DNA from: Vitrella brassicaformis CCMP3155
Lineage: Eukaryota; Protista; Chromerida
Reading direction: 5' to 3'
Assembly (NCBI GenBank): GCA_001179505.1
Contig: CDMY01001036.1
Span: 124,001-188,000 of the forward strand
Length of the DNA: 64,000 nt
The notes beneath the pieces were generated by a model, which was not told the origin of the DNA, did no database searches, and worked only from the letters and a program-made list of their open reading frames with translations. Of this stretch, positions 13,392 through 26,383 are shown one piece after another. The position numbers and the translations under genes were made by a program. The first letter of the stretch is position 1. Each line of letters opens with the position of its first letter.

Positions 13392-16300
13392 TCACTGGTG
13401 GGTGTTGCACGGGATGCTGGGCACATCTATTTGAGGAGTATCTTGGGCCTGCACAAAGGCAGACAGACAGACAGACAGGCATGCAGTCGCCTTCTTCAGC
13501 GGTGTGCATGTGTGCGTGTGTGGAGAGGAGCTGAATGACACTCACGTAGGATGTAGTATTCTGGTACGGTATGTGTGTCGTCATTCACCAGTCGGCCTCC
13601 TCCTCACCTGATCAACCACACACACACACACACACAGAGAGAGAGAGGAACAGCCACGCTCTCATGCCTGTCTGTCCGCCTGTCCATCTGTCTGTGAGCA
13701 TGTGTGTGGTACCCCGGTTGGATGGTGTGTGTTGCACGCGGGGTGGCGGAGCACGGCTCGAAGCAGGGGCAGCACCGTAGCGGTCGTCGTAGCCTCCCTG
13801 CTCGCGGGGCGGGCGGCGATCCTCCTCAAACTCCTGACCGATTCATTGATGGGGGACACACACAGACATACACACGTTGATCCGGATCCACATGTTCACA
13901 CCGTCCCCGGCCGCCCCATCGACTCACTAGGTTGTTGCGGTTCTGTCGGGGCGGTGCAGCGCCGCCGCGGCGCTCCTCACGGTCACGATAGTCCCGAGGG
14001 CGCATGACGTCTGGGGGGCACACACGAGACAGACGACACATACACATACAGCACACCCACACCGCCCATGTGTCTTATGCCTGTGTCTGTGTGTGCCATT
14101 GCTGACCCTGTCCAGCGCCCATGCCAGGAACCACAGCAGGGCCGTTGTCACGGAAGGCTCGCATGTTGCCGCCGCCGTAGCCCCCACCCCCGCCACCGCC
14201 ACCACCCCCGCCACGCCCGCCACGGCCGCTGTCACGGTCATAGTCGTCCTCACGGCCACGACGCTCGTTGCCCCGCTCCACACCATCTAGGACAACACGG
14301 AACACTGAAAGTGGTGGCAATGTCGGCTCGCTGTCTGCCCTGCCTTTGTGTGTGTGGTGGTGGGGGTGCTTACGCCGTCCGCCGTATTGGTCGCGGTGGT
14401 CACGGTTGTAGTCACGGTTGTAGTCACGGTCACGGTCCTGACGCACACCGACACACACGCACAGACACGCACAGATAGTTCTGCATGTCGAGAGAGAGGC
14501 ATCCTCCATCTGCCGCACGTCGTTGTATTGGTGGTAGTTGTTGCGCCCCCCTGTTCGCTCGACGTCCTCCTCGCGGGGCGCGTAGTAGTTGTTGTTGTTG
14601 CGCCCCCCACCGTCACGACGGCCGCCACCCCCACCGCCACCACCACCTCCACGACGGTCACGCGTGTCGTACTCATCCTCATACGCTGAGAGAGTTGATG
14701 AAGAAAGGAATGCCATCCACACGCAATCATCCGCCGCTCCATGTGTGTGAGAGGGCATCCATCTCTCTCTGTGTGTTCCATCCACTTACTGTCTCGGCCT
14801 CGATCGCGGTCGCGGTTGTCTCGCTGCTGTCGTCGGCTGTCTCGGGGCGCGCTGTCGAAGCCGGGGGGCGTGGCGGGTGGCGGGGCGGCTGAAGGTAGGG
14901 TCCGCTGCAAGAGCTGCTGCATCTGCTGGTGCATCTCGGCCTGCATCTGGGCCTGCTGCTGCTGCAACCGCTGCAGCTCCTCCTGGTGCTTGCGGTTGTT
15001 CTCGGCCAGCTCCTCGCGGTGCTTGGCGTCCTTGGCCTCGTTCTGCTGCTGTATGTACTCCATCATCGCTGACGTCAGACGATGGGTGAGAGGGGGAGGG
15101 GGGAGGGAGGGAGGGGCGCGCACACACACAGACACACAGACACACACACACATGGACAGATGGAGAGATGGCTGTGTTGCGGGGGAAGTGTGTGTGTGTG
15201 TGTGTGCGCGCACCCTTGAAGTCGGCAGCCTGTGGCTGGGGGCTGACGCCTGATGGAATGGAATGGAGCGATGGATGGATGGAGGGAGAGAGGGAGGAAG
15301 AGGCAACAAGACAACAGAAGATGGTACCCTGTCTCCCCTCTCTGTCGTGTGTGTGTTTGGTGGGGTGGGTCGTACCGTTGGTCGATGCAGACGCAGCAGC
15401 AGCAGCGCCACCGCCAGTGTTGGTGTTGCCGCCCCATCCTCCGCCCCCGCCAGACGCCTCGTTGCCCCAGCCGCCGCCAGACGGTGACGATGCCGCACCT
15501 GCGCCCCAGCCACCTCCACTAGTGTTGCCCCAACCACCGCCACCACCTCCTCCGCCACCGCCAATCGCTGCCTCCTCAGCTGAGGTGACAGAGGCAGTGT
15601 GTGTGTGAGGGGGGGTATGGTGGATGTGTGTATGNNNNNNNNNNNNNNNNNNNNNNNNNNNNNNNNNNNNNNNNNNNNNNNNNNNNNNNNNNNNNNNNNN
15701 NNNNNNNNNNNNNNNNNNNNNNNNNNNNNNNNNNNNNNNNNNNNNNNNNNNNNNNNNNNNNNNNNNNNNNNNNNNNNNNNNNNNNNNNNNNNNNNNNNNN
15801 NNNNNNNNNNNNNNNNNNNNNNNNNNNNNNNNNNNNNNNNNNNNNNNNNNNNNNNNNNNNNNNNNNNNNNNNNNNNNNNNNNNNNNNNNNNNNNNNNNNN
15901 NNNNNNNNNNNNNNNNNNNNNNNNNNNNNNNNNNGGCGGGTCCCAGGGGGGTAGTTTCTCTTGGTTCTTGATCATCTCGAGCAGCTCCACCATGTGGTCG
16001 ACCGCCTCCTTCGGCCCTGCCATGTGCACATAACATGCAGGCCATCGACACGCACAAGGCGTTGGTTTGTGCAGATTGCTTTGTCTCTCTCTCTCTCTGT
16101 GTCTCTCTCTCTGTCTGTGTGTGTGTGTGTGTGGTGACCTTTGATGTTGACGAGGTCGCTGCCCGTGTCTCTATCTGGAAACTCTATCTGGATGACATCT
16201 GCCCGACGCACAGCCCAGCCCAGCACAGCCCGGCGCAACATGTCCTCCCACCAACAAACCGTCTGTCTGTGTGTGTGGTGTGTCTGTACCATCTCCACCG

Positions 16301-19300
16301 CATCGCTGGCGCAGCTCCTTGACCATCTGACCTCCCTTGCCGATGTACCGACCAGCAGCCTCCTGCACCAGACACACGAAGACACACACATACCCCTGTG
16401 TGTCGGTGTGTCTGTCTGTCTGGCTGGCTGTGGGCGTGTGTGTAGTCGTGTGGGAGTGTGTGTCTTTGTGTCTTACGGATGACTCCAGTTGGAATGTGGT
16501 CTCTGTCTCAGGTCCGCCAAATCGGGGTGCGCCGCCCCCTGCTGCTGCAGCTGCACTAGAGCTACTGCCGCCCCAACCACCGCCGCCAAAGCCACCTGAC
16601 GACACGCACACACACACACACATACACACACACATACACACGGCCATGTGTGTCGCCCGTGTGTGTGAGGGATTGTGGTGCGAACGGACCGGAGGGCTGC
16701 TCGGGCTCGTCTGGGAGTTTCTGGCCGTTCTTGATCATCTGCAGGTACTTGAGACACTGAGCCACGGCATCCTTCGGGCCTGCCAGCCACAGCACAGACA
16801 CAGACACACAAATGAGGGAGTGAGGGAGACGGAGGGAGAGGGAGGTGGCTTGGTCAACCGCTGGCTGACGCACCGGCAACTTTGACGCCTGTGTCGCCGG
16901 TGCCCCTCTTGGGCGTGTCGATACGGACCTCTGCACACACACAGACACGCGCACGACACACGACACAATGTGTGTGTAATGGTTGGTTAGGCAGGTGTGA
17001 AGGTGTGCGCGTTGGCAGGTGTGCAGGCAGGCAGGTATGTACCTACCTCCGAGTGGTTGGCAGAGGTCCTTGAGTTGGTTGATGACGCAGCCGCCATTGC
17101 CAACGTACTTGCCGGTCTCGCCCTCAGACGTCATCTGGAACACCTCCTCGACCTTACCATCGCCGCCGCCCTCTAAACCCACACACACACAGAGGGAGGG
17201 AAGAAGAGAGAGAGGAAGGGGGATGGATGGATGTGTGTGTGTGTGTGTGTGTTTCAGTTGCTCTGCTCACCTTCTGTTTCGATGCGGCCGCCCGCTTTGA
17301 TCTTCTCGCAGAGCACCATGGCCCTGTCGATGGCCGCACGTATACCTGCACACACGTAAGAACACACATACGCACATCGACAGAGTGCGGGCCTCGTTGG
17401 CCTGGCCTGGCCTGTGCCGTGGTCGCACCGCTGATCCTGATGACGCCCGGGTGTTCGTCGTCGCTGATGTTGATGCGGGCTGATGGACAACCAAAGATGG
17501 AGAGGTGTGTGGGTGTGGGTGTGGTTGGCTGGTGTGTGTGGTGTGGTGTGTGCAATAGTCACCTCCTGACTGCTGCTCGATGGCCTTGCGGATGAGGCCG
17601 CCCTTGCCGATGTACTTCCGGGCGTCGCTCGTGTCCTCCTGACACCCATCAAACATACACACACACACACACACTCAGATGAGGGAGGCGTTGAGTTGCA
17701 TAGTGTTGCGCTTGTTGTGGTGGTGACATTGGGCCCCCATCCCTCCCTCCCTCCTCTCTCCCTTCTCTCTGTTGCTCACTCACGGTGTCGTTCATGAAGA
17801 AGTCCTCGGTGAGTTCGTCCTCCTTACGATAGCCCTCCTTGTGACACCGGAAGAACGCGTCGAACTTCTGCACACGAACATATGGAGAGGAGAGAGGAGA
17901 GAGAGCCTGAGTGTGTGTGTGTGTGTGTGACAGGCAAGCAGCGTACGGGCGGCTGCTTGGGCGGCGCCCTGCCCTCGAGCTTCTCACGGTCCACCAACCT
18001 CGCCCCACTGCACACACACACACACACACACAAGGCGCACAAGACACACACGATCCATCTCAGAGAGCGCGTGCATGTGTTGGAGGTCTCTCTCTCTCTC
18101 TCTGTGGTGGCCGACTCACTCGAACTTATCGGTTCCGTCGAAATCAAAGTCCCCGCCGTTGATGACTGTCTCGAGCTCAGGCGGCACCTGCTGCTGGGCG
18201 TTCTCCATCACCTAACCACACACACGCACACACACACACACAACACCAGCCATTTACCCACCTGCACATCTGTTTGTTTGTTTGGGTGCCTGCCCACCCC
18301 ACCTCCTTGATTCTTGCTGGCAGGTCAGGGTGGATTTCGTAGTCCTTCTCCGAGAACAGCGCCCAGGAGGAGCCCTTCCTGCCGGCCCGTCCGGTGCGTC
18401 CGATACGGTGGATGTAGTCTCGGATGTTGTCGGGGAAGTCGAACACTATCACGTCACGCAGGTACTCGACGTCGATACCGCGGCTGGCCACGTCAGTCGC
18501 TGCACATGCACATGGACACACACACCACACACCACACACACCATGTGTGACGCTGAGAGGGTTGTGGGGAGGGAGAGGGGGTGGGGTGCAGACATCCGTT
18601 GCGTACCGACGAGGATGCGTTTGCGGAAGGTCTTGAACTGGCGCATGGCGGCGTTGCGGTCAGGCTGGTCCTTGCCGCCGTGGATGACGGTGCTCTGGTA
18701 GCCTGTGCACGTCAGCTGCTCGTTCAACTCGTCAGCCGCTGCACATAGACACACACACACACCGGGGAAGAGAGGGATGGCGCTGGTCGTTGTGGTGTGC
18801 GCGTGTGCGTGTGTGCGTGTGTGCGTCGTGGTGCTTTTGTGTGTTGTGTGTGTACCGTACCTCTCTTTGAGTTGGTGAAGATGAGGATGAGGTCGTTGTT
18901 TTTGCGTTCGCCGTCCATGTGCAGGAAATGCAGGATGCCCGAGAGGATGCGCTTCTTGAGCTTCCGCTGGTGGTGGGTGGGTGGGTTGGTAGGTTCGGTG
19001 GGGACACACAACACACAACACACAGACACAACACACAACACACAACACATGGGAGGGAGGAGTGTGCGCCACACACAACACATGGGAGGGAGGAGTGTGC
19101 GTGTGTGTTGTGCGTGTTTGTGTGTCCGGCCGGACGGACGTTGCAGAGGACGACGTTCTGCTCGATGTCGGGGCAGGCACGCAACTCCTTCTCACCTTCA
19201 CACACACACCACACACACACACGCACACACACCTTTGACTTTTGCAATGGAGTCGTCTCTCTCTCTCTCTCTCTCTGTCTGCGCGTGTGGGTACACACAC

Positions 19301-22300
19301 ACATACATACGTACCGCACTGAATCCGAATTGGGTCCGTCACGCAAAACTCGCGAGCCAAAGCACGGACCTGGAGGACACACACACATCGACACACACAC
19401 ATGGCAGACAGACAGACAGACAGACAGACGGACAGGTGCGCATGAGAGGTCCTGTGGGGGCGTGTCAGTGAGCGGGCCCTCGCTGACCTCAGAGGGCCAC
19501 GTGGCCGACCACATGAGCATCTGCCGGTCGTGGCGAGTGGCGCGGATGATCTGCACACACACACACACACACACACAGACCACACGAGATGAGATTAGAT
19601 GAGGTGAGGCTGTCCCTGTTTGCCTGCCATCCTGCCTGAGCTGGTTGGTCACCTGTCCGATCTGTCGCTCGAATCCTCCCTGGCACAGCCGGTCGGCCTC
19701 GTCCAGGACGATGAACGTCGTACGGTTGAAACGCACCTTCCCCTTCTGCACACACACAGACACAACACAGACACCACACACACCACACACCGTGTACCAG
19801 AGAGAATGAAGGCCCATGTGGGTGGTGTGCGGGCGTCCATCCATCCGTCCGTACCACGAGCAGGTCCATGATGCGGCCGGCGGTGGCGATGCAGATCTCC
19901 TTGGGCGGCGAGAAGAGGTCGAACGACATGGAGCGGTCGCCGCCGATGCACTTGACGGCGCGCAGGCCGCTGTGAAGGAACTTCTGGCACTCCTCGTAGA
20001 TCTGCTGCGACAACTCACTGCAGCGCACACAACACATCAACACATCCATCCTCCGTGCACTGGGGTGGGAGTGGTGGTGTGTGTGAGAGGTGAGAGTGCA
20101 CTGACCCACCCACCGTGTGGGCGAGAGAATGAGCGCGATGGGCCCGTCGCCTTGCTTGAGCTCCGGCTGGGCTATGCAGTGCGCCATGCACGGCAGAAGG
20201 TACGCCAACGTCTTGCCAGAACCTGCCACACACACACACACACACGAGACACGAGACACGAGCACAGCAACACCGTTCACTCAACCAGCACCGCTACCTC
20301 TATGTGTCTGTGTCTGTGTGTGTGTGTGCGTACCAGTCTGTGCGATGCCGACCATGTCGCGGCCGCCGAGTGCGACGGGCCACCCCTGCATCTGAATGGG
20401 CCGCGGTTGGCCCCAGCCACGGTCCTCTACGATCTGTGTGATCTTGACTGCACAAAACACAACAGATCACATCACATCACACACATGACACTGTGTGGTT
20501 TGTGTCTTGTGGTTGGTGGTGGTTCTGAGTGACGTGACAGGTAGGCACCACCCTACCGTTGAAGCCTGCCTCTTGGAAGGTCCGAACGGGCCTGGGGCAG
20601 GGCTGGCCCTTCACATCCAAAATGACAATGTGCCTGTGTGTGAACAGGTAGACGGACGGGGTGATGAGATGAAGGGGTGTGTGTGGTGTGTTGGGTGTGT
20701 TGCTCACTCACTCGTCATTGCGTAGTTTGGTGACGTCCTGGTCCGTCATGGCGCTGACATCGGGATGCACCTGAGGAGGGAGAGGACACACACACACACA
20801 CACGCATGCGGAGAAGGAAGAGGCATACACACATGGACGCAATGAAACCTCTCTGTCTGACTGTCTGTCTGTCTGTCTGTGCGTAGACGTGTGTGTGTGT
20901 GTGTGTGTGTGAGGTGAGCCTACTTTGTAGAAGTCCTTGACGAATTTGTTGGAGTCCTGCCAGCCCTGGATCTTCTCGGGCGTGCAGCCCGCCAACATCT
21001 GACACACACACACAGACACACGAGGTTCACATCACACCACACCACACATGGATCATGACACACACCGATTGGTTTACCTTGTCAAACTGCTCCTCCATGT
21101 CGTCCCAGTTGAAAGAATCCTGAACACACACACAGACACACACACACATGGACGATGGATGGACACAGCACCGCCCGCCACAGATACCCCGCCCCCTCCC
21201 TCTATATATCTTCCTTAACACGCCTACGTTCTTGGCCTCGCCACCGCCCTCCTCGGCCCCACTGGCAGCCTCACCGCCCCATCCCCCACCGCCACCACTA
21301 GGAGAGCTACCGCCGCCCCAACCTCCTCCTCCACCCCCTCCGCCAGATCCCCATCCCCCACCGCCCCCACCACCAGACGAGTTGCCCCCTGCGCCCCATC
21401 CGCCGCTCGACGACGAGGCCGCAGCTGCCGCAGCCGCCCCCGCACCTCCAGCCGACGAAGAGCCCCAACCGTCGCCCCCACCGCCCGATGCTGGTTTGGG
21501 CTGAGGTTTGGAAGCGGGTTTGCTGGGGCCGCCGCCACCGCCTCCCCCCCACTCGTCCTCCTCGTCCTCATCCTCTGGCTGTGGCTGTGCGATGGAGGGG
21601 GTGGGCATGGGTGGCTTCTGTGTCTGTGAGGGTGCGGGTGCAGCGGGCTTCTTGGTCTGAGTGGCGGATGAATTGCCCCAGTCGTCCTCCTCGTCACTGT
21701 CATGATTGGCAGGTGCAGGTGCAGGTGCAGGTGCGCGTGCGGGGGCCGGAGCAGGCGCAGCGGCCTTGGCGACCGTCGGGGGTGCCTTGAGAGCCTGAAT
21801 GAATGAATGAACCAGCCAACCAACACCGTCTCAATATGTATGTGATATGATTGATGTGTGGTGTGGTTTGGTGTGGTCTCACCGCGGGAGCGCCGCTGCC
21901 CCAGTCGTCGTCATCGTCCTCAGTGGCCGGTGCCGGCTGCTCTGACGGCTGCTGCTGACGGGGCTGCTGCTGCTGCCGACCTCCAGCCGCAGACGGCTTC
22001 TGACCACACACACACACACACGCCACACACGCCACACAGCCAGCAACCAACACACGTGTCATCACACGGGTGCCCATCCCATCCCATCCGTCCGTCTGTC
22101 TGAGTGTGGTGCCCTGCCCACGTTGGCCGCCGGCTGTGTGTTGCCTGAGCCCCAGTCGTCGTCCGACTCATCGTCACCATTCTTGCTCATCATCACGATG
22201 ATCTCCTGCGGCTGGGAGGGCACGAACGGTGCGATCTTGGGCATCGGCACATCCTTGAGCGGCTCCTCCTTGGCAGTGGGGATGTGGATGTCGGTGTCCT

Positions 22301-24056
22301 TGGCAGTGCTGACCATGGCGACGGCGGGGGCGCCGCTGGACTTCTCGGGCGACTCGGGGTCGTTGACCACACTGGGGTCCTCTGCAACACTCGCGTCTGA
22401 TGCATACATAGCACAGCACATGCAGGGAAAGGGTTTGGTGAGGGGTGTGGTGTGGTGTGGTGTGGTGGGTTGAGAGTGTGGTGACCAGCGAGTCGCGTAC
22501 GTAACGTACCCGCGGCAGCAGGGGCCATCTTGGTGGCGTCTGTGTTGTCTTTGTCTTTGTCCTTGGCCTCCTCCTCAACACACACACTCTCAACGCTCTC
22601 AATGCTACCGGCTACTGAACCACACACACAGACATCCACAGAGCACAGAACGGCACAGCACAGCACAGCACATGAGTGACTGAGTGAGTGCCCCATCCGT
22701 CCCATCTCCTTCGTGTTGGCTGGCTGTGGGTGTTTCCTTGTTGTGTGTTACCTTTGTTGTCCTCATCCTGCTGCTGCTGCTGCTGCTCTGTGCGATTCTC
22801 CCCCTCCCCCTCCTCGCCCTTCTGACCCTCAGCCGCGCCCTCCTGACCACACACGCCCACACCCTCACCCTCTCCCTCACCCAATCCGTCAACTCCAACA
22901 CCAACACACACGTCAGGGGGCGACACGTGGTCACCGCCCTCGCCACATGCAACAGCCCCCTCCTCCCCCTCAGCCCCCTCCCCGCCCTTGGCCTCGTCCT
23001 TGGCCTCGCCCTTGGCCACGTCGTCAGCTGTGTGGCCCTTGTCGATGTGGTCATCGACCGTCTCTGCGCCCTGTGCGGCTTTCGTCACGACGGGCGAGGC
23101 GGGTGGGCTTGCGCTCTCGATGAACTGCTCGTGCTGCTTGGCCATGGCCTCCACGGTGCCCTCGGGGGGGCGTGAGGGGGGCTGGGGGGGTATGGTGCGC
23201 TCGAGGGCGTCATTGCTGTGGTCGGGTGTCTGGAACTCCTGCTGCTGCTGCTGCTGCTGCTGCTGTTGGTCGGCCTGCTGTCCTCCGCCGTCACCATCAG
23301 GTGTCGTGAACTCCTGATGGGGTTGGTTGCTGTCCTCTGGCTGGACGGCCGGTGACTCCTCCTCCAACACAGCGGCACCAGCTGCACACAGGCAGACACA
23401 CAGAGAGGGGGGGAGGACGGGAAACGTGTTGCAGAGGGTTGATATGGTGTTGTGTGATGGTGTAGTGGTGTGGAGGGGTGTGCGGCGGTGGTGGCGAGGC
23501 CTCTCTGACGTGTTGCTGACCCCAACGCGGTGGGGTGCGACCCCTCTGACCACGTGTGTGTGTGTGCGCTGGTCTACACCCCCTCCCCCTCCCTCCGCTC
23601 ACCGGGCTGCTCGTGTGGTTTGCTCTCGGTGTTGGGGTCCTTCTGCTGCTGGTCTTGGGTGCCGTCGTTGCCCTCTCCCTGCTGGTCTCCGTCGACGGCA
23701 CCGCCCTCCTGATGCTCGGTGGTGGTGATGTGGCCGTTCTCGGCTGTCGGCTGGTGTTGCTGCGCCTCAGGGGAGTCGCCACCGTCTTGACCGACAGGGG
23801 AGGGGTCTGCACACACGCGCACCACACCCCCCCACACGCAGAACACCATGCTGGACGCGAGACACGTGTGGCGTATGGTGCGGTGTGTGGAGGTGTGTTT
23901 TGGCTGTGTGGGGGTGTGCGGTGGTGTGTGGTGTCGGCGCTAGAGGGTGTGTGATGAGATGCCGGGCTGGCGTGGACGGGGGGAGGTGTCTTGGTGTGTG
24001 CCCTTGCCACCCGTGCCCGTCTCCATACCTTGCTCGCCGGATTCGTGGTCTGACAT
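13392..24056 (-). CDS. Giant DDX5/Dbp2-like DEAD-box RNA helicase: acidic N-terminal extension, WG/GW repeats, 3 C-terminal KH domains, coiled coil and RG/RD-rich tail (>35 exons; last exons below about 13.7 kb uncertain; spans a gap)
   Basis: Q motif [14 protein letters not shown]; I AQTGSGKT; Ia [19 protein letters not shown]; Ib TAGRIMD; II LDEAD; III SAT; [11 protein letters not shown]; [12 protein letters not shown]; post-core [12 protein letters not shown]. Phase-consistent splicing continues into KH1 (KYIGKGG), KH2 (KYVGNGG) and KH3 (RYIGKGG). Confidence 0.85.
15635..15934. other. Assembly gap (300 N) inside the DEAD-box/KH gene
   Basis: N run. Confidence 0.99.
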
Positions 24057-24465: not shown

Positions 24466-24674
24466 TGTGCCCAGACCCCAACTTGTCAAAAAGCAGAGGA
24501 CGGGAATTGGCCTCATGCAGTGAAGATCTGCCTTGCGTGGAGCTCGTATCCGGGGGAAAAGGCGAATAACCGCCACATCCGCAAGCTCATCTCGCCTCGA
24601 GGAGTCCCGAAGTGATGATGAAGGCGTCTGTGTCGTCCCTCACGCGCTGTACAGCCCTTCGCCAGCACCTCACC

Positions 24675-26383
24675 ATGCTTCGATGCGCGCTTGTCCGTCC
24701 CGCCCAATCATCGCTTGCCACAGCAGCTCTCCAGGCATCCCAAGCGGCGTTCGTCCGTCCGATCAGCACATCCCCCTCCCTTAGGCAGTCGGCTGCAGCT
24801 GCCCAGGACTCGTCAACGACTGGTGCTCAGGGGGACAGTGATCTGCCGCCCTTCCCTCCCCCTCTCTATGACGGCGAGACAGAGGTGCTCACACCTGAGC
24901 AGCAGAAGCAGAAGGCGGAGCTCATCAAGGAGCTCACGCGGCGGCTGAGCGGCCCCCTGGCCGACGAGGAGGGCAATGTCCCGACCGGCAAGGACCGCCC
25001 CACGGCCATCGAGGTCGACGGCCCCTCCCACTTCTACGCCAACAGCCACAGGTACACTGCCTACACGAAGCTCAAGCACCGGCTGCTGACGCGCATGGGC
25101 TACCGAGTGCTGCACGTGCCGTACTTCGAGTGGCGTCGGCTGCGGGGTCAGAAGGAGAGGGAGGAGTATATGATACGGAAGCTCAAGGAGGAGCCGACCG
25201 AGTGGCTGGACCCCGAGGACGAGCAGTACTACACACAGCGCCTCACTGAGACGCTCGGGCAGAAGACCGCAGAGCTGGTGAGTGAGGACACACACGCACA
25301 CATACACAGAGCATACAGAGGACACAGAGAGGGAGGGGATCAATCCATCCATCCATCCATCGATGGATGCTGCATTTCCGGATGCTGCATTTCCCCTTTT
25401 CTACTGGTGTGTTGGTTTTGCGTTTCAGACTCCTGAGCAAAGGGCGAATATAACCCCTCCGTCTGGCCCAGCCCCCACCACGCCCGCCTCCCCACCGCCT
25501 CCCCCCCCTCCCCAAGGCGTGCAGCACCAGCACCACCAGCAGCAGCAGCAGCAGCCTGCGATGCCGCCACCGCCCACGATGCAGTCATCCTCATTCTCTC
25601 CGCCACCGCCTCCACCATCTATGGGCGACATGCCACCACCGAGAGGCCCGGCTCCAGTGCGGCCGCCAGTGGCGCCAAATACAGCTGCGGGTCAGATGCC
25701 GCCACCGCCACAGCAGCCATACATGGGGATGGGCCGGCCCCCACCACGGCCACAGATGGGCCAGCGGCCGCAGGGGGGAATGCCTTCTCCTCCTCAAGGT
25801 GGGAATGGGCATGCGCACACGAAACAGATGGCTGTCTGCTGATCACGTGTCTGTCTGTCTGTCAGGTATGCGTCCTCCTCCCCCCGCTGGCTCAGGTCCG
25901 ATGCGCCCGCAGATGACGGGCATGCCCCCTCCACCGCCACCTGGCGGCATGGGTATGGGTGCACCGCCACCACCGAGACCCAATATGGCACCACATCAAC
26001 AAGGTGAGAGAAGGGCATCAGGTGCTGCTGTGCTGGATGACCTGACCTGACTCGCCGTATATCGTATCTATCTGCATGCATTTGTATATCATGTGTGTGG
26101 TGTGTTTGCTCAGGCATGGGTGCGCCTTCGATGCCTCGGCCTCCCTCATCGCCCTTCCCACGCCCGCCGGTAAGAGACTACGACCGCCGGTTGTGCACAT
26201 GCATTAATTAAGGAGTCGAGGGGCCCTTCTCGTGGTTGCCTTTGCTTGTTGTTTCGTCAGGGTATGAGTTTCCAAGGCCGACCTCCCCCTCCCCCGCCCC
26301 CCTCAGCCCCCCCACCACCAGCCCCAGACAGCGCCGAGCCACAGACCAGTGGAGAGCAGCAGGGTGGGTCCGCAACCAACTGA
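24675..26383 (+). CDS. RAP-domain protein with predicted mitochondrial-type N-terminal presequence and long Pro-rich C-terminal tail
   Basis: [33 protein letters not shown] is Arg/Ala/Ser-rich with no acidic residues; RAP motif [33 protein letters not shown]; 4 further phase-consistent exons to TGA at 26381-26383. Confidence 0.88.

Follow-up and report, generated by a model that had tools for sequence, protein, structure and literature searches.

The window analyzed here comprises 64,000 nucleotides of Vitrella brassicaformis CCMP3155 (assembly GCA_001179505.1, contig CDMY01001036.1, positions 124,001 to 188,000) and contains, on the minus strand, an intron-dense gene, which extends from approximately 22400 to approximately 13700 of the window, with its start and stop both still open. 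The locus represents one expressed gene, whose protein product of about 1,500 residues or more combines a DEAD-box RNA helicase core, three KH domains located downstream of it, and two arrays of tryptophan-glycine (WG) dipeptides. The window has a G+C content of about 60%, and the introns of the gene are rich in TG/CA and GACA microsatellites. The exon model was developed from frame-compatible GT-AG sites and RNA joints; upstream of 21165 and downstream of 14790, the exons were placed on the basis of frame and splice sites alone. The 27 exons between 21119 and 15935 (median length 77 nt) gave, when joined, a reading frame that was open from end to end, and all introns between 21066 and 15935 were of the GT-AG type. 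All gene coordinates below refer to the minus strand of the window, and genome-wide searches were performed on the V. brassicaformis assembly (72.7 Mb in 1064 contigs).

The contigs of four public runs were placed on positions 15300–21290. Runs X1, X7, and X8 each provided one contig of 2.6–2.9 kb that consisted of exons only and extended from 20218 down to 15375/15420. The contigs proceeded from the P-loop exon through the remaining core, the linker, and the three KH domains to the C-terminal WG array in one open frame, and their joints read CT..AC on the plus strand, which corresponds to GT..AG for a minus-strand gene. The DNA run X3, which shares its sample with X7, covered both exons and introns and lacked the splice joints. 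Distances recorded in X1 equaled exactly the summed exon lengths for four helicase exons (267 nt), for the three linker exons with KH1 (439 nt), for the latter half of KH2 as far as the WG exon (149 nt), and for KH3 with the seven letters that bridge the gap (221 nt). Further upstream than 20218, the lengths of the contigs are consistent with five more exons in addition to the first 4 nt of the P-loop exon; according to the record arithmetic, X1 and X8 reached 37–110 nt into the 3′ end of the WG-bearing exon N4. An earlier reading of the same DNA made from the letters alone (hereafter, the sequence-only reading) had proposed that the helicase and KH parts belong to a single gene and had joined them through the junctions GTDKF/GARLVD, KQPP/KFDAFF, and MNDT/EDTSD. 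All three junctions proved correct by their GT-AG borders, open frame, and X1 record arithmetic, and the X1, X7, and X8 transcripts continued past KH1 rather than ending before it.

An assembly gap (15635–15934) interrupts the locus downstream of KH3. In all three contigs (X1, X7, and X8), position 15935 was joined to 15580 with seven extra letters. Together with two leftover bases of the KH3 exon, these letters form three codons, so that the gap is bridged in frame as …PPWDPPQPAEEAA…. Therefore, the gap conceals the last 7–8 bases of the exon, its donor, and most of an intron, and the two sides of the gap are continuous and in frame in the mRNA. Thus, spliced contigs crossed both intervals at which the sequence-only reading could be checked by RNA, namely 17641–17783 and the gap at 15635, with the frame kept in each case.

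A search with the motif V/VI exon among 1.84 billion representative proteins revealed a sole close match, the 169-residue read-through fragment P0001. Its source was the ENA metagenome contig L015 (ERZ893784, k147_320271; 2554 nt), which is collinear with positions 19721–16831 of the window. In L015, 14 complete exons aligned without gaps and with their AG/GT borders kept, and a 15th was interrupted by the end of the contig; identity with Vitrella was 92.6% over the 14 complete exons and about 66% over the introns. The 410 joined codons contained no stop and no indel. The preservation of exons, borders, and frame therefore indicated that the helicase-linker-KH chain is conserved as coding sequence. 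The ratio of synonymous to non-synonymous codon differences was 20:9 for the helicase, 10:12 for the linker, and 9:16 for the KH exons, most changes being conservative; by this count, the KH part is less constrained than the helicase core. The other representative-protein matches were DDX5-like, WW-DEAD, and DDX43 proteins, and none of the 20 that were scanned with Pfam had a KH domain after the helicase. Neither the coiled-coil exon region nor the N-terminal WG exon retrieved any homologous protein; a metagenome contig scan with the coiled-coil exon likewise found nothing, and the scan with the helicase exon found only generic DEAD-box genes with identity of at most 70%. Metagenome contigs labelled as human-gut were not used. 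The metagenome from which L015 derives contains a second Vitrella-like lineage, which could be used for comparative annotation of the whole genome.

The DEAD-box core (18303–20998) is encoded by 13 exons: 20998–20924, 20770–20712, 20633–20557, 20447–20334, 20222–20114, 20017–19855, 19745–19653, 19550–19488, 19369–19315, 19195–19140, 18966–18861, 18738–18607, and 18499–18303. Their placement was based on Pfam matches per exon, RNA joints, and the open frame; for the exons of the Q-motif region, before 20218, the placement relied solely on the joints 20447/20557 and 20632/20711 and on the length of the contigs. The exon N5 (21066–21119; DSFNWDD…), supported by GT-AG sites and frame and consistent with the length of contig X1 upstream of 20218, leads into the helicase flank. 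Pfam DEAD was matched exon by exon in the order of the profile (positions 1–24, 24–55, 56–109, 113–146, and 142–163), and Helicase_C followed with positions 32–72 and 71–110, all collinear on the minus strand. In the joined frame, the FVKDFY flank, the Q motif, and the other core motifs were readable and intact, with the exception of motif Ib, which is unusual in having IATAGR (TAGR) at the place of the usual TPGR. The Q motif, motif I (AxTGSGKT), DEAD, SAT, motif V, and motif VI (HRxGRxGR) occur in this order over two RecA-like domains, as expected of a DEAD-box helicase of superfamily 2 (SF2). Apart from motif Ib, the intact DDX5/Dbp2-type core described in the sequence-only reading was thus recovered. 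The features of an SDE3/MOV10/Armitage helicase, with a UPF1-like superfamily 1 (SF1) core, were not found in this SF2 core.

The group of DDX5, DDX17, and DDX43 is marked by SATWP following motif III, by PIQxQxWP within the Q region, and by an N-terminal FxKxFY flank. All three marks were present in the Vitrella core. Phylogenetic analysis of the spliced core with a Spb4-type outgroup placed it within the DDX5/DDX43 set, the support in the careful tree being only 84/81 (ultrafast bootstrap/Shimodaira–Hasegawa-like approximate likelihood ratio test). The core formed a long branch (1.8) in an unresolved DDX5/DDX43 polytomy and lay outside the animal DDX43 clade, which had 100/100 support. A tree that united the Vitrella core with DDX43 was not rejected by the approximately unbiased test (p = 0.76) and was 8.6 log-likelihood units above the quick-search tree, both branches being long. 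The nearest named proteins were DDX5/DBP2-like proteins, plant WW-DEAD, and an insect DDX43, and the best identity (46%) was to the DDX5/DBP2-like ones. Judged by its core sequence, the helicase belongs to the DDX5/DDX43 group, in which it forms a long branch. The KH domains may represent either an independent gain or the inheritance of an old KH-helicase lineage. No close paralogue of the helicase-KH gene was found in the genome. A canonical DDX5-type gene is located separately at C294; between the two genes, the first 44 residues of the motif V/VI exon are 68% identical. The C294 gene has YG/RGG tails, no KH domain, and no WG array.

The core is connected to KH1 by a linker of about 80 residues (17784–18211), encoded by exons 18211–18120, 18007–17947, and 17867–17784. 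The RNA joint 17867/18120 fixes part of it, and the rest was derived from X1 record arithmetic with GT-AG sites and frame; the borders and the frame are kept in L015. KH1 (17271–17638; exons 17638–17563, 17479–17429, and 17345–17271), KH2 (16690–17172; exons 17172–17047, 16930–16874, and 16779–16690), and KH3 (15935–16362; exons 16362–16290, 16198–16139, and 16016–15935) were confirmed by the RNA joints 17343/17427 and 17479/17563, 16930/17047 and 16778/16873, and 16361/16476 and 16018/16290, respectively. The GxxG loops are present in all three domains (GKGG, GNGG, and GKGG), and the GNGG of KH2 is GKGG in L015. Pfam KH_1 matched the first exon of KH1 (E = 0.039, profile positions 10–30) and the 25-residue exon of KH3 (E = 2.9e-4, 21.0 bits, just under the cut-off of 21.5); these matches on the first exons of KH1 and KH3 span profile positions 9–30 and are exon-level rather than whole-domain matches. 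With Pfam KH_1 alone, no match was obtained on the KH2 exons, and in a whole-genome KH_1 scan the locus was not among the 50 scored candidates. A further KH profile, for which the KH domains of roughly 110 DDX43-type proteins were used, was run on all 1787 open stretches in the window. The six best-scoring stretches included four of the predicted KH exons, namely the second exon of KH1, the first and second exons of KH2, and the 25-residue exon of KH3 (the best), each on the matching segment of the profile. Taken together, the exon-level profile matches and the open, RNA-backed frame support the three KH domains that had been read from their loops, which are probably of type I. Neither Pfam KH_1 nor the DDX43-KH profile detected a KH signal upstream of the core, and all three domains lie downstream of it.

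The three KH units share a common gene structure of three exons each, with both internal introns in phase 1 and at equivalent places. All six of these introns (15935–17638) being in phase 1, each unit constitutes a symmetric three-exon cassette, which could be duplicated or shuffled without loss of frame. In addition, KH2 and KH3 are each followed by a proline-rich KLP…P stretch (KLPDEPEQP at the end of KH2; KLPPWDPPQP in the last KH3 exon, which continues 7–8 nt into the gap) and by a glycine-rich WG tract. This shared arrangement indicates that one KH-plus-WG module was duplicated and that the tryptophan was kept in both copies.

The sequence-only reading had counted at least 14 WG dipeptides in glycine- or acid-rich disorder, nine before the core and five among or after the KH domains. 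The count of 14 was confirmed, with nine dipeptides before the core, one between KH2 and KH3, and four after KH3. The N-terminal array is distributed over exon N2 (22122–22396; acidic, disordered, WG no. 1 in DDDWGSG), exon N3 (21883–21999; WG no. 2 in DDDDDWGSG), both placed by frame and GT-AG sites, and exon N4 (21165–21794), a single open stretch that is first Ala/Pro-rich and then acidic and glycine-rich, contains WG nos. 3–9, and ends with RGRGRG. Exon N2 is probably internal, because an AG acceptor is present. The tenth WG lies in a glycine-rich exon (16477–16595), covered by RNA pieces at 16476–16593 in X1, X7, and X8, and WG nos. 11–14 form the C-terminal array in a Gly/Asn/Ser/Ala tract (15376–15580), covered by RNA pieces at 15375/15420–15580. 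The donor of exon N4 at 21165 is provisional, since it implies an intron of just 45 nt. This intron (21120–21164) is the sole in-frame GT-AG solution, the neighboring introns being 67–173 nt long; the true donor may be non-canonical or located elsewhere.

Over the 464 disordered residues, glycine follows 14 of 14 tryptophans, a value reached by none of 200,000 shuffles, and the preceding residue is Gly (10) or Asp/Glu (4). The spacing between tryptophans in the N-terminal array tightens from 46 to 11–15 residues (43, 28, 23, 15, 11, and 13 within exon N4); in the C-terminal array it is 8, 13, and 11. In the WG tracts, the residues W, G, N, S, A, and D account for a fraction of 0.55–0.82 and L, I, M, Y, and C for 0.01–0.05. 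Argonaute-binding WG/GW platforms prefer such a composition (PMC2910046), and the Vitrella protein has the several WG dipeptides in disorder with this bias that characterize them. No WG array was present in the controls, namely the RGG tracts of the gene itself, an RGG run within one Piwi exon, and the tail sequences of the C294 DDX5 protein; the RGG tracts of the gene use tyrosine and hold no tryptophan. Downstream of the C-terminal array, a Q-rich exon (14790–15068), which then turns into proline-rich sequence and RD repeats, was modelled by AlphaFold2 from a single sequence as one long helix (residues 2–56, predicted local distance difference test score 86–96), and the X1 length implies that the contig reaches it. 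It is followed by RD/RGG/YG tail exons (13732–14685; approximately 14685–14519, 14437–14374, 14286–14107, 14010–13928, and 13833–…), which rest on frame and GT-AG sites and whose 3′ end is not fixed. Thus, the Q-rich coiled coil with an RD/RGG tail that had been read from the letters was recovered as a predicted helix followed by tail exons in frame, the coiled coil itself being a candidate. Elsewhere in the genome, an in-frame WG array, GGGWGGGWGGDWGGGWGG, was observed in a Ser/Ala-rich open stretch at C405:166862–166933 (L020 5709–6113, minus strand); this open reading frame had no Pfam match, and the nearest recognizable gene encodes ribosomal protein L9.

Comparison with known proteins demonstrated that the claim of an architecture belonging to no described family was too strong. 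The combination of KH domains with a DDX5-like DEAD core is that of DDX43/DDX53, and it is not new, because the DDX43 group includes a protein with five KH domains in Mytilus and one with a C-terminal KH domain in Culicoides. The part of the claim that stands is the combination of three C-terminal KH domains with two WG arrays, which is new as judged from the sequences compared. Like DDX43/DDX53, the Vitrella protein joins KH domains to a core of the DDX5 kind that has both SATWP and the FxKxFY flank; unlike them, it has all three KH domains C-terminal and none N-terminal, and its core is a long branch outside the animal DDX43 clade (100/100). To our knowledge, neither WG arrays nor a Q-rich helix nor an RD/RGG tail has been described for DDX43. 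The motif set, N-terminal flank, and glycine-rich tails resemble those of DDX5/Dbp2/DDX17, which are also the nearest sequences by identity, whereas the KH domains and WG arrays are additions of the Vitrella protein. The association of KH and DEAD-box domains had been called unique to DDX43, a helicase of the animal PIWI pathway (PMC8025031). The two DDX43-query matches mentioned above, P0277 of Mytilus edulis with five N-terminal KH domains and P0229 of Culicoides sonorensis with a KH domain after the helicase (both by automatic annotation, the latter outside the tree), are at odds with the usual description of DDX43-type proteins as having one N-terminal KH domain.

The WG arrays resemble the platforms of GW182/TNRC6, NRPE1, SPT5L, Tas3, Wag1p, and CnjBp in their repeated WG in disorder and in a composition that favors G, S, N, A, and D while L, I, M, Y, and C are depleted; unlike in those proteins, none of their other domains occurs in the Vitrella protein. 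A precedent for the fusion of a helicase with a GW hook is plant SDE3, which was listed among the WG/GW proteins (PMC2910046) and whose GW peptide requires pocket 1 of AGO1 for full binding (bioRxiv 10.1101/2025.10.18.683247). Both proteins combine an RNA helicase and GW motifs in one polypeptide; however, SDE3 belongs to SF1 and has a few GW motifs in a disordered C-terminal region and no KH domain, whereas the Vitrella protein belongs to SF2 and combines a DEAD-box core with KH domains and two arrays.

Argonaute-family genes, on which the sequence-only reading depended, are present in the genome: Piwi-domain matches were found at six loci, of which four exceeded the Pfam cut-off and two also had PAZ matches. 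The two Piwi exon types examined had their best matches among PIWI-clade structures, PIWIL1 with Ago3 and Siwi close behind for one type, and Siwi and Piwi-A for the other. At C537:20182–23469 (L001 1333–1887, minus strand), a PAZ+Piwi exon runs from the PIWI core into a GGRGGRGG tract of about 40 residues, located inside or directly after the PIWI domain. A HEN1/HENMT1-type small-RNA methyltransferase locus was detected at C305:514000–520232 (L018), with human HENMT1 matched at E = 1.4e-8 on one exon and bacterial Hen1 matched as well; its exons had no Pfam domain, and the identity comes from a PDB sequence search. The exact pattern GGWGGWGGWG had two matches in the genome, one of which lies about 1 kb downstream of the HEN1-type exons on the same strand. 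The acidic WG exon of that locus (L018 2964–3377, minus strand) reads …ESGGWGGWGGWGDD… and is terminated by a stop codon. A scan with zf-U11-48K for a GTSF1-like gene gave nothing at the genome-wide threshold.

The architecture of the Vitrella protein is settled, and from it we infer a function. We tentatively propose, with a confidence not quite reaching an even one, an RNA-tethered, ATP-driven remodeller that would be brought by its tryptophan arrays to PIWI-type Argonaute complexes. The KH array would hold single-stranded RNA, and the DEAD-box core would provide ATP-driven clamping, local unwinding, or stripping of RNA from protein. The two WG arrays would serve as multivalent tryptophan docking motifs recruiting the enzyme to the PIWI-type complexes, where target or guide RNA might be released or handed over in the manner of DDX43 and Vasa in animals. 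DDX43 frees cleaved RNA from the Ago3 complex with PIWI-interacting RNA (Ago3-piRISC), and its KH domain is needed for this activity as well as for ATPase activity and RNA binding (PMC8025031). In the alveolate Tetrahymena, GW-repeat proteins and the helicase Ema1p act on the PIWI-type protein Twi1p (PMC5666084), and we propose the arrangement of Ema1p with the GW proteins Wag1p and CnjBp around Twi1p as a possible parallel. The Gly/Trp, RGG, and helical parts would probably favor condensate formation as well. Docking of an Argonaute by the WG arrays, considered on its own, is plausible from their composition and context, if still somewhat short of probable.

Several observations weigh against this proposal. 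WG/GW scoring is known to yield false positives among glycine-rich proteins (PMC2910046), and WG pattern scans of the genome gave 1.2 to 2 times the control counts among the matches listed. The tryptophan pocket of HsAgo2 includes K660 and L694, F653, and R688 (bioRxiv 10.1101/2025.10.18.683247). In the C537 Piwi exon, placed by the printed ungapped alignment with human Ago3 and carried to Ago2 numbering by hand, F653 is kept, and K660, R688, and L694 are replaced by T, E, and I, respectively. The C227-type exon, for which the printed alignments were to Siwi and Piwi-A, has G, K, and A at K660, R688, and L694 by hand alignment. As K660 and R688 are not kept in the two exon types, a contact of the GW182 type is not expected as such. 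PIWI-type proteins may bind tryptophan differently from HsAgo2; GTSF1, for example, binds the PIWI protein MIWI through W98/W107/W112 (PMC9385479). In addition, the listed RNA pieces cover none of the nine N-terminal WG codons, probably because assemblies break in glycine repeats, and the protein and metagenome contig searches found no orthologue beyond the near relative L015.

A broader version of the proposal is that WG tracts constitute a general docking code, which would tether several small-RNA enzymes, this helicase and HEN1 among them, to PIWI-type Argonautes, the helicase being a self-docking enzyme that unloads the RNA-induced silencing complex (RISC). We regard this version as rather unlikely; if it held, the protein would be the chromerid counterpart of DDX43/Vasa fused with a hook of the Wag1p/CnjBp type.

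The strongest alternative is that the WG tracts are not Argonaute hooks but aromatic stickers in Gly/Ser spacers, which would promote RNA binding and condensates in concert with the Q-rich helix and the RGG tail; in that case, the enzyme would act as a general, DDX5-like remodeller of ribonucleoproteins in splicing, ribosome biogenesis, or RNA granules. DEAD-box proteins often have glycine-rich aromatic tails, the C294 DDX5 paralogue has YG/RGG tracts, and we know of no Argonaute role for the C-terminal tail of yeast Ded1, which carries GW/WG motifs. The false WG/GW scores of glycine-rich proteins and the absence of the canonical Ago2 pocket residues from the examined Piwi exons favor this explanation as well. 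However, the WG tracts use tryptophan, always followed by glycine, with no tyrosine and one phenylalanine (in the GGFGGGGW exon), the RGG tracts of the same gene use tyrosine instead, and a similar WG cluster occurs at the HEN1 locus. We give the sticker explanation a substantial weight, while not holding it to be probable. An improbable alternative is that the tryptophan motifs dock a non-Argonaute partner, for example, a component of an RNA-decay, tailing, or transport complex, in whose pathway the KH-helicase would then function. Short tryptophan-centered motifs in disorder are used by many systems, a WG array is also present in the C405 open reading frame, and nematode GTSF-1 is reported to bind an RNA-dependent RNA polymerase instead of PIWI (PMC13650160); however, no candidate partner was identified. 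Finally, the gap inside the locus, and the consideration that a contig spanning two genes does not by itself prove one transcript, might suggest two adjacent genes, one for a helicase and one for a KH protein, or else a mis-join, mistakenly read as one, but this can practically be dismissed, as the contigs are spliced via three linker exons in one open frame with no stop in 27 exons, the gap is bridged in frame in three runs, and L015 keeps the same helicase-linker-KH1-KH2 exon chain.

The pairing of KH and DEAD-box domains in an alga near the root of Apicomplexa would reflect either an independent origin or the retention of an old ancestral trait. Argonautes are recruited through WG motifs in ciliates and fungi as well as in plants and animals, and the Vitrella protein carries two arrays of this motif. 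If the arrays bind PIWI-type proteins, the protein would provide a compact model for bringing a helicase to a silencing complex and would point to a tryptophan-based recruitment network in chromerids, a group in which small-RNA biology has hardly been studied; under the docking-code version, a free-living relative of Apicomplexa would possess a self-docking helicase that unloads RISC. If they do not bind, the protein would still be a clean example of tryptophan-only sticker arrays in an RNA helicase.

Upstream of exon N2, an open coding-like stretch (22909–23385, minus strand), Q/E-rich and without tryptophan, represents a possible further exon, whose membership in the gene is uncertain; it had many GT-AG options to the next exon and no Pfam match. 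An Rfam scan of the locus gave no match. A RAP-domain gene (24612–25433, plus strand; Pfam E = 4e-23) is arranged head-to-head with the helicase gene, and the intervening stretch of approximately 0.5 kb may serve both genes as a promoter region.

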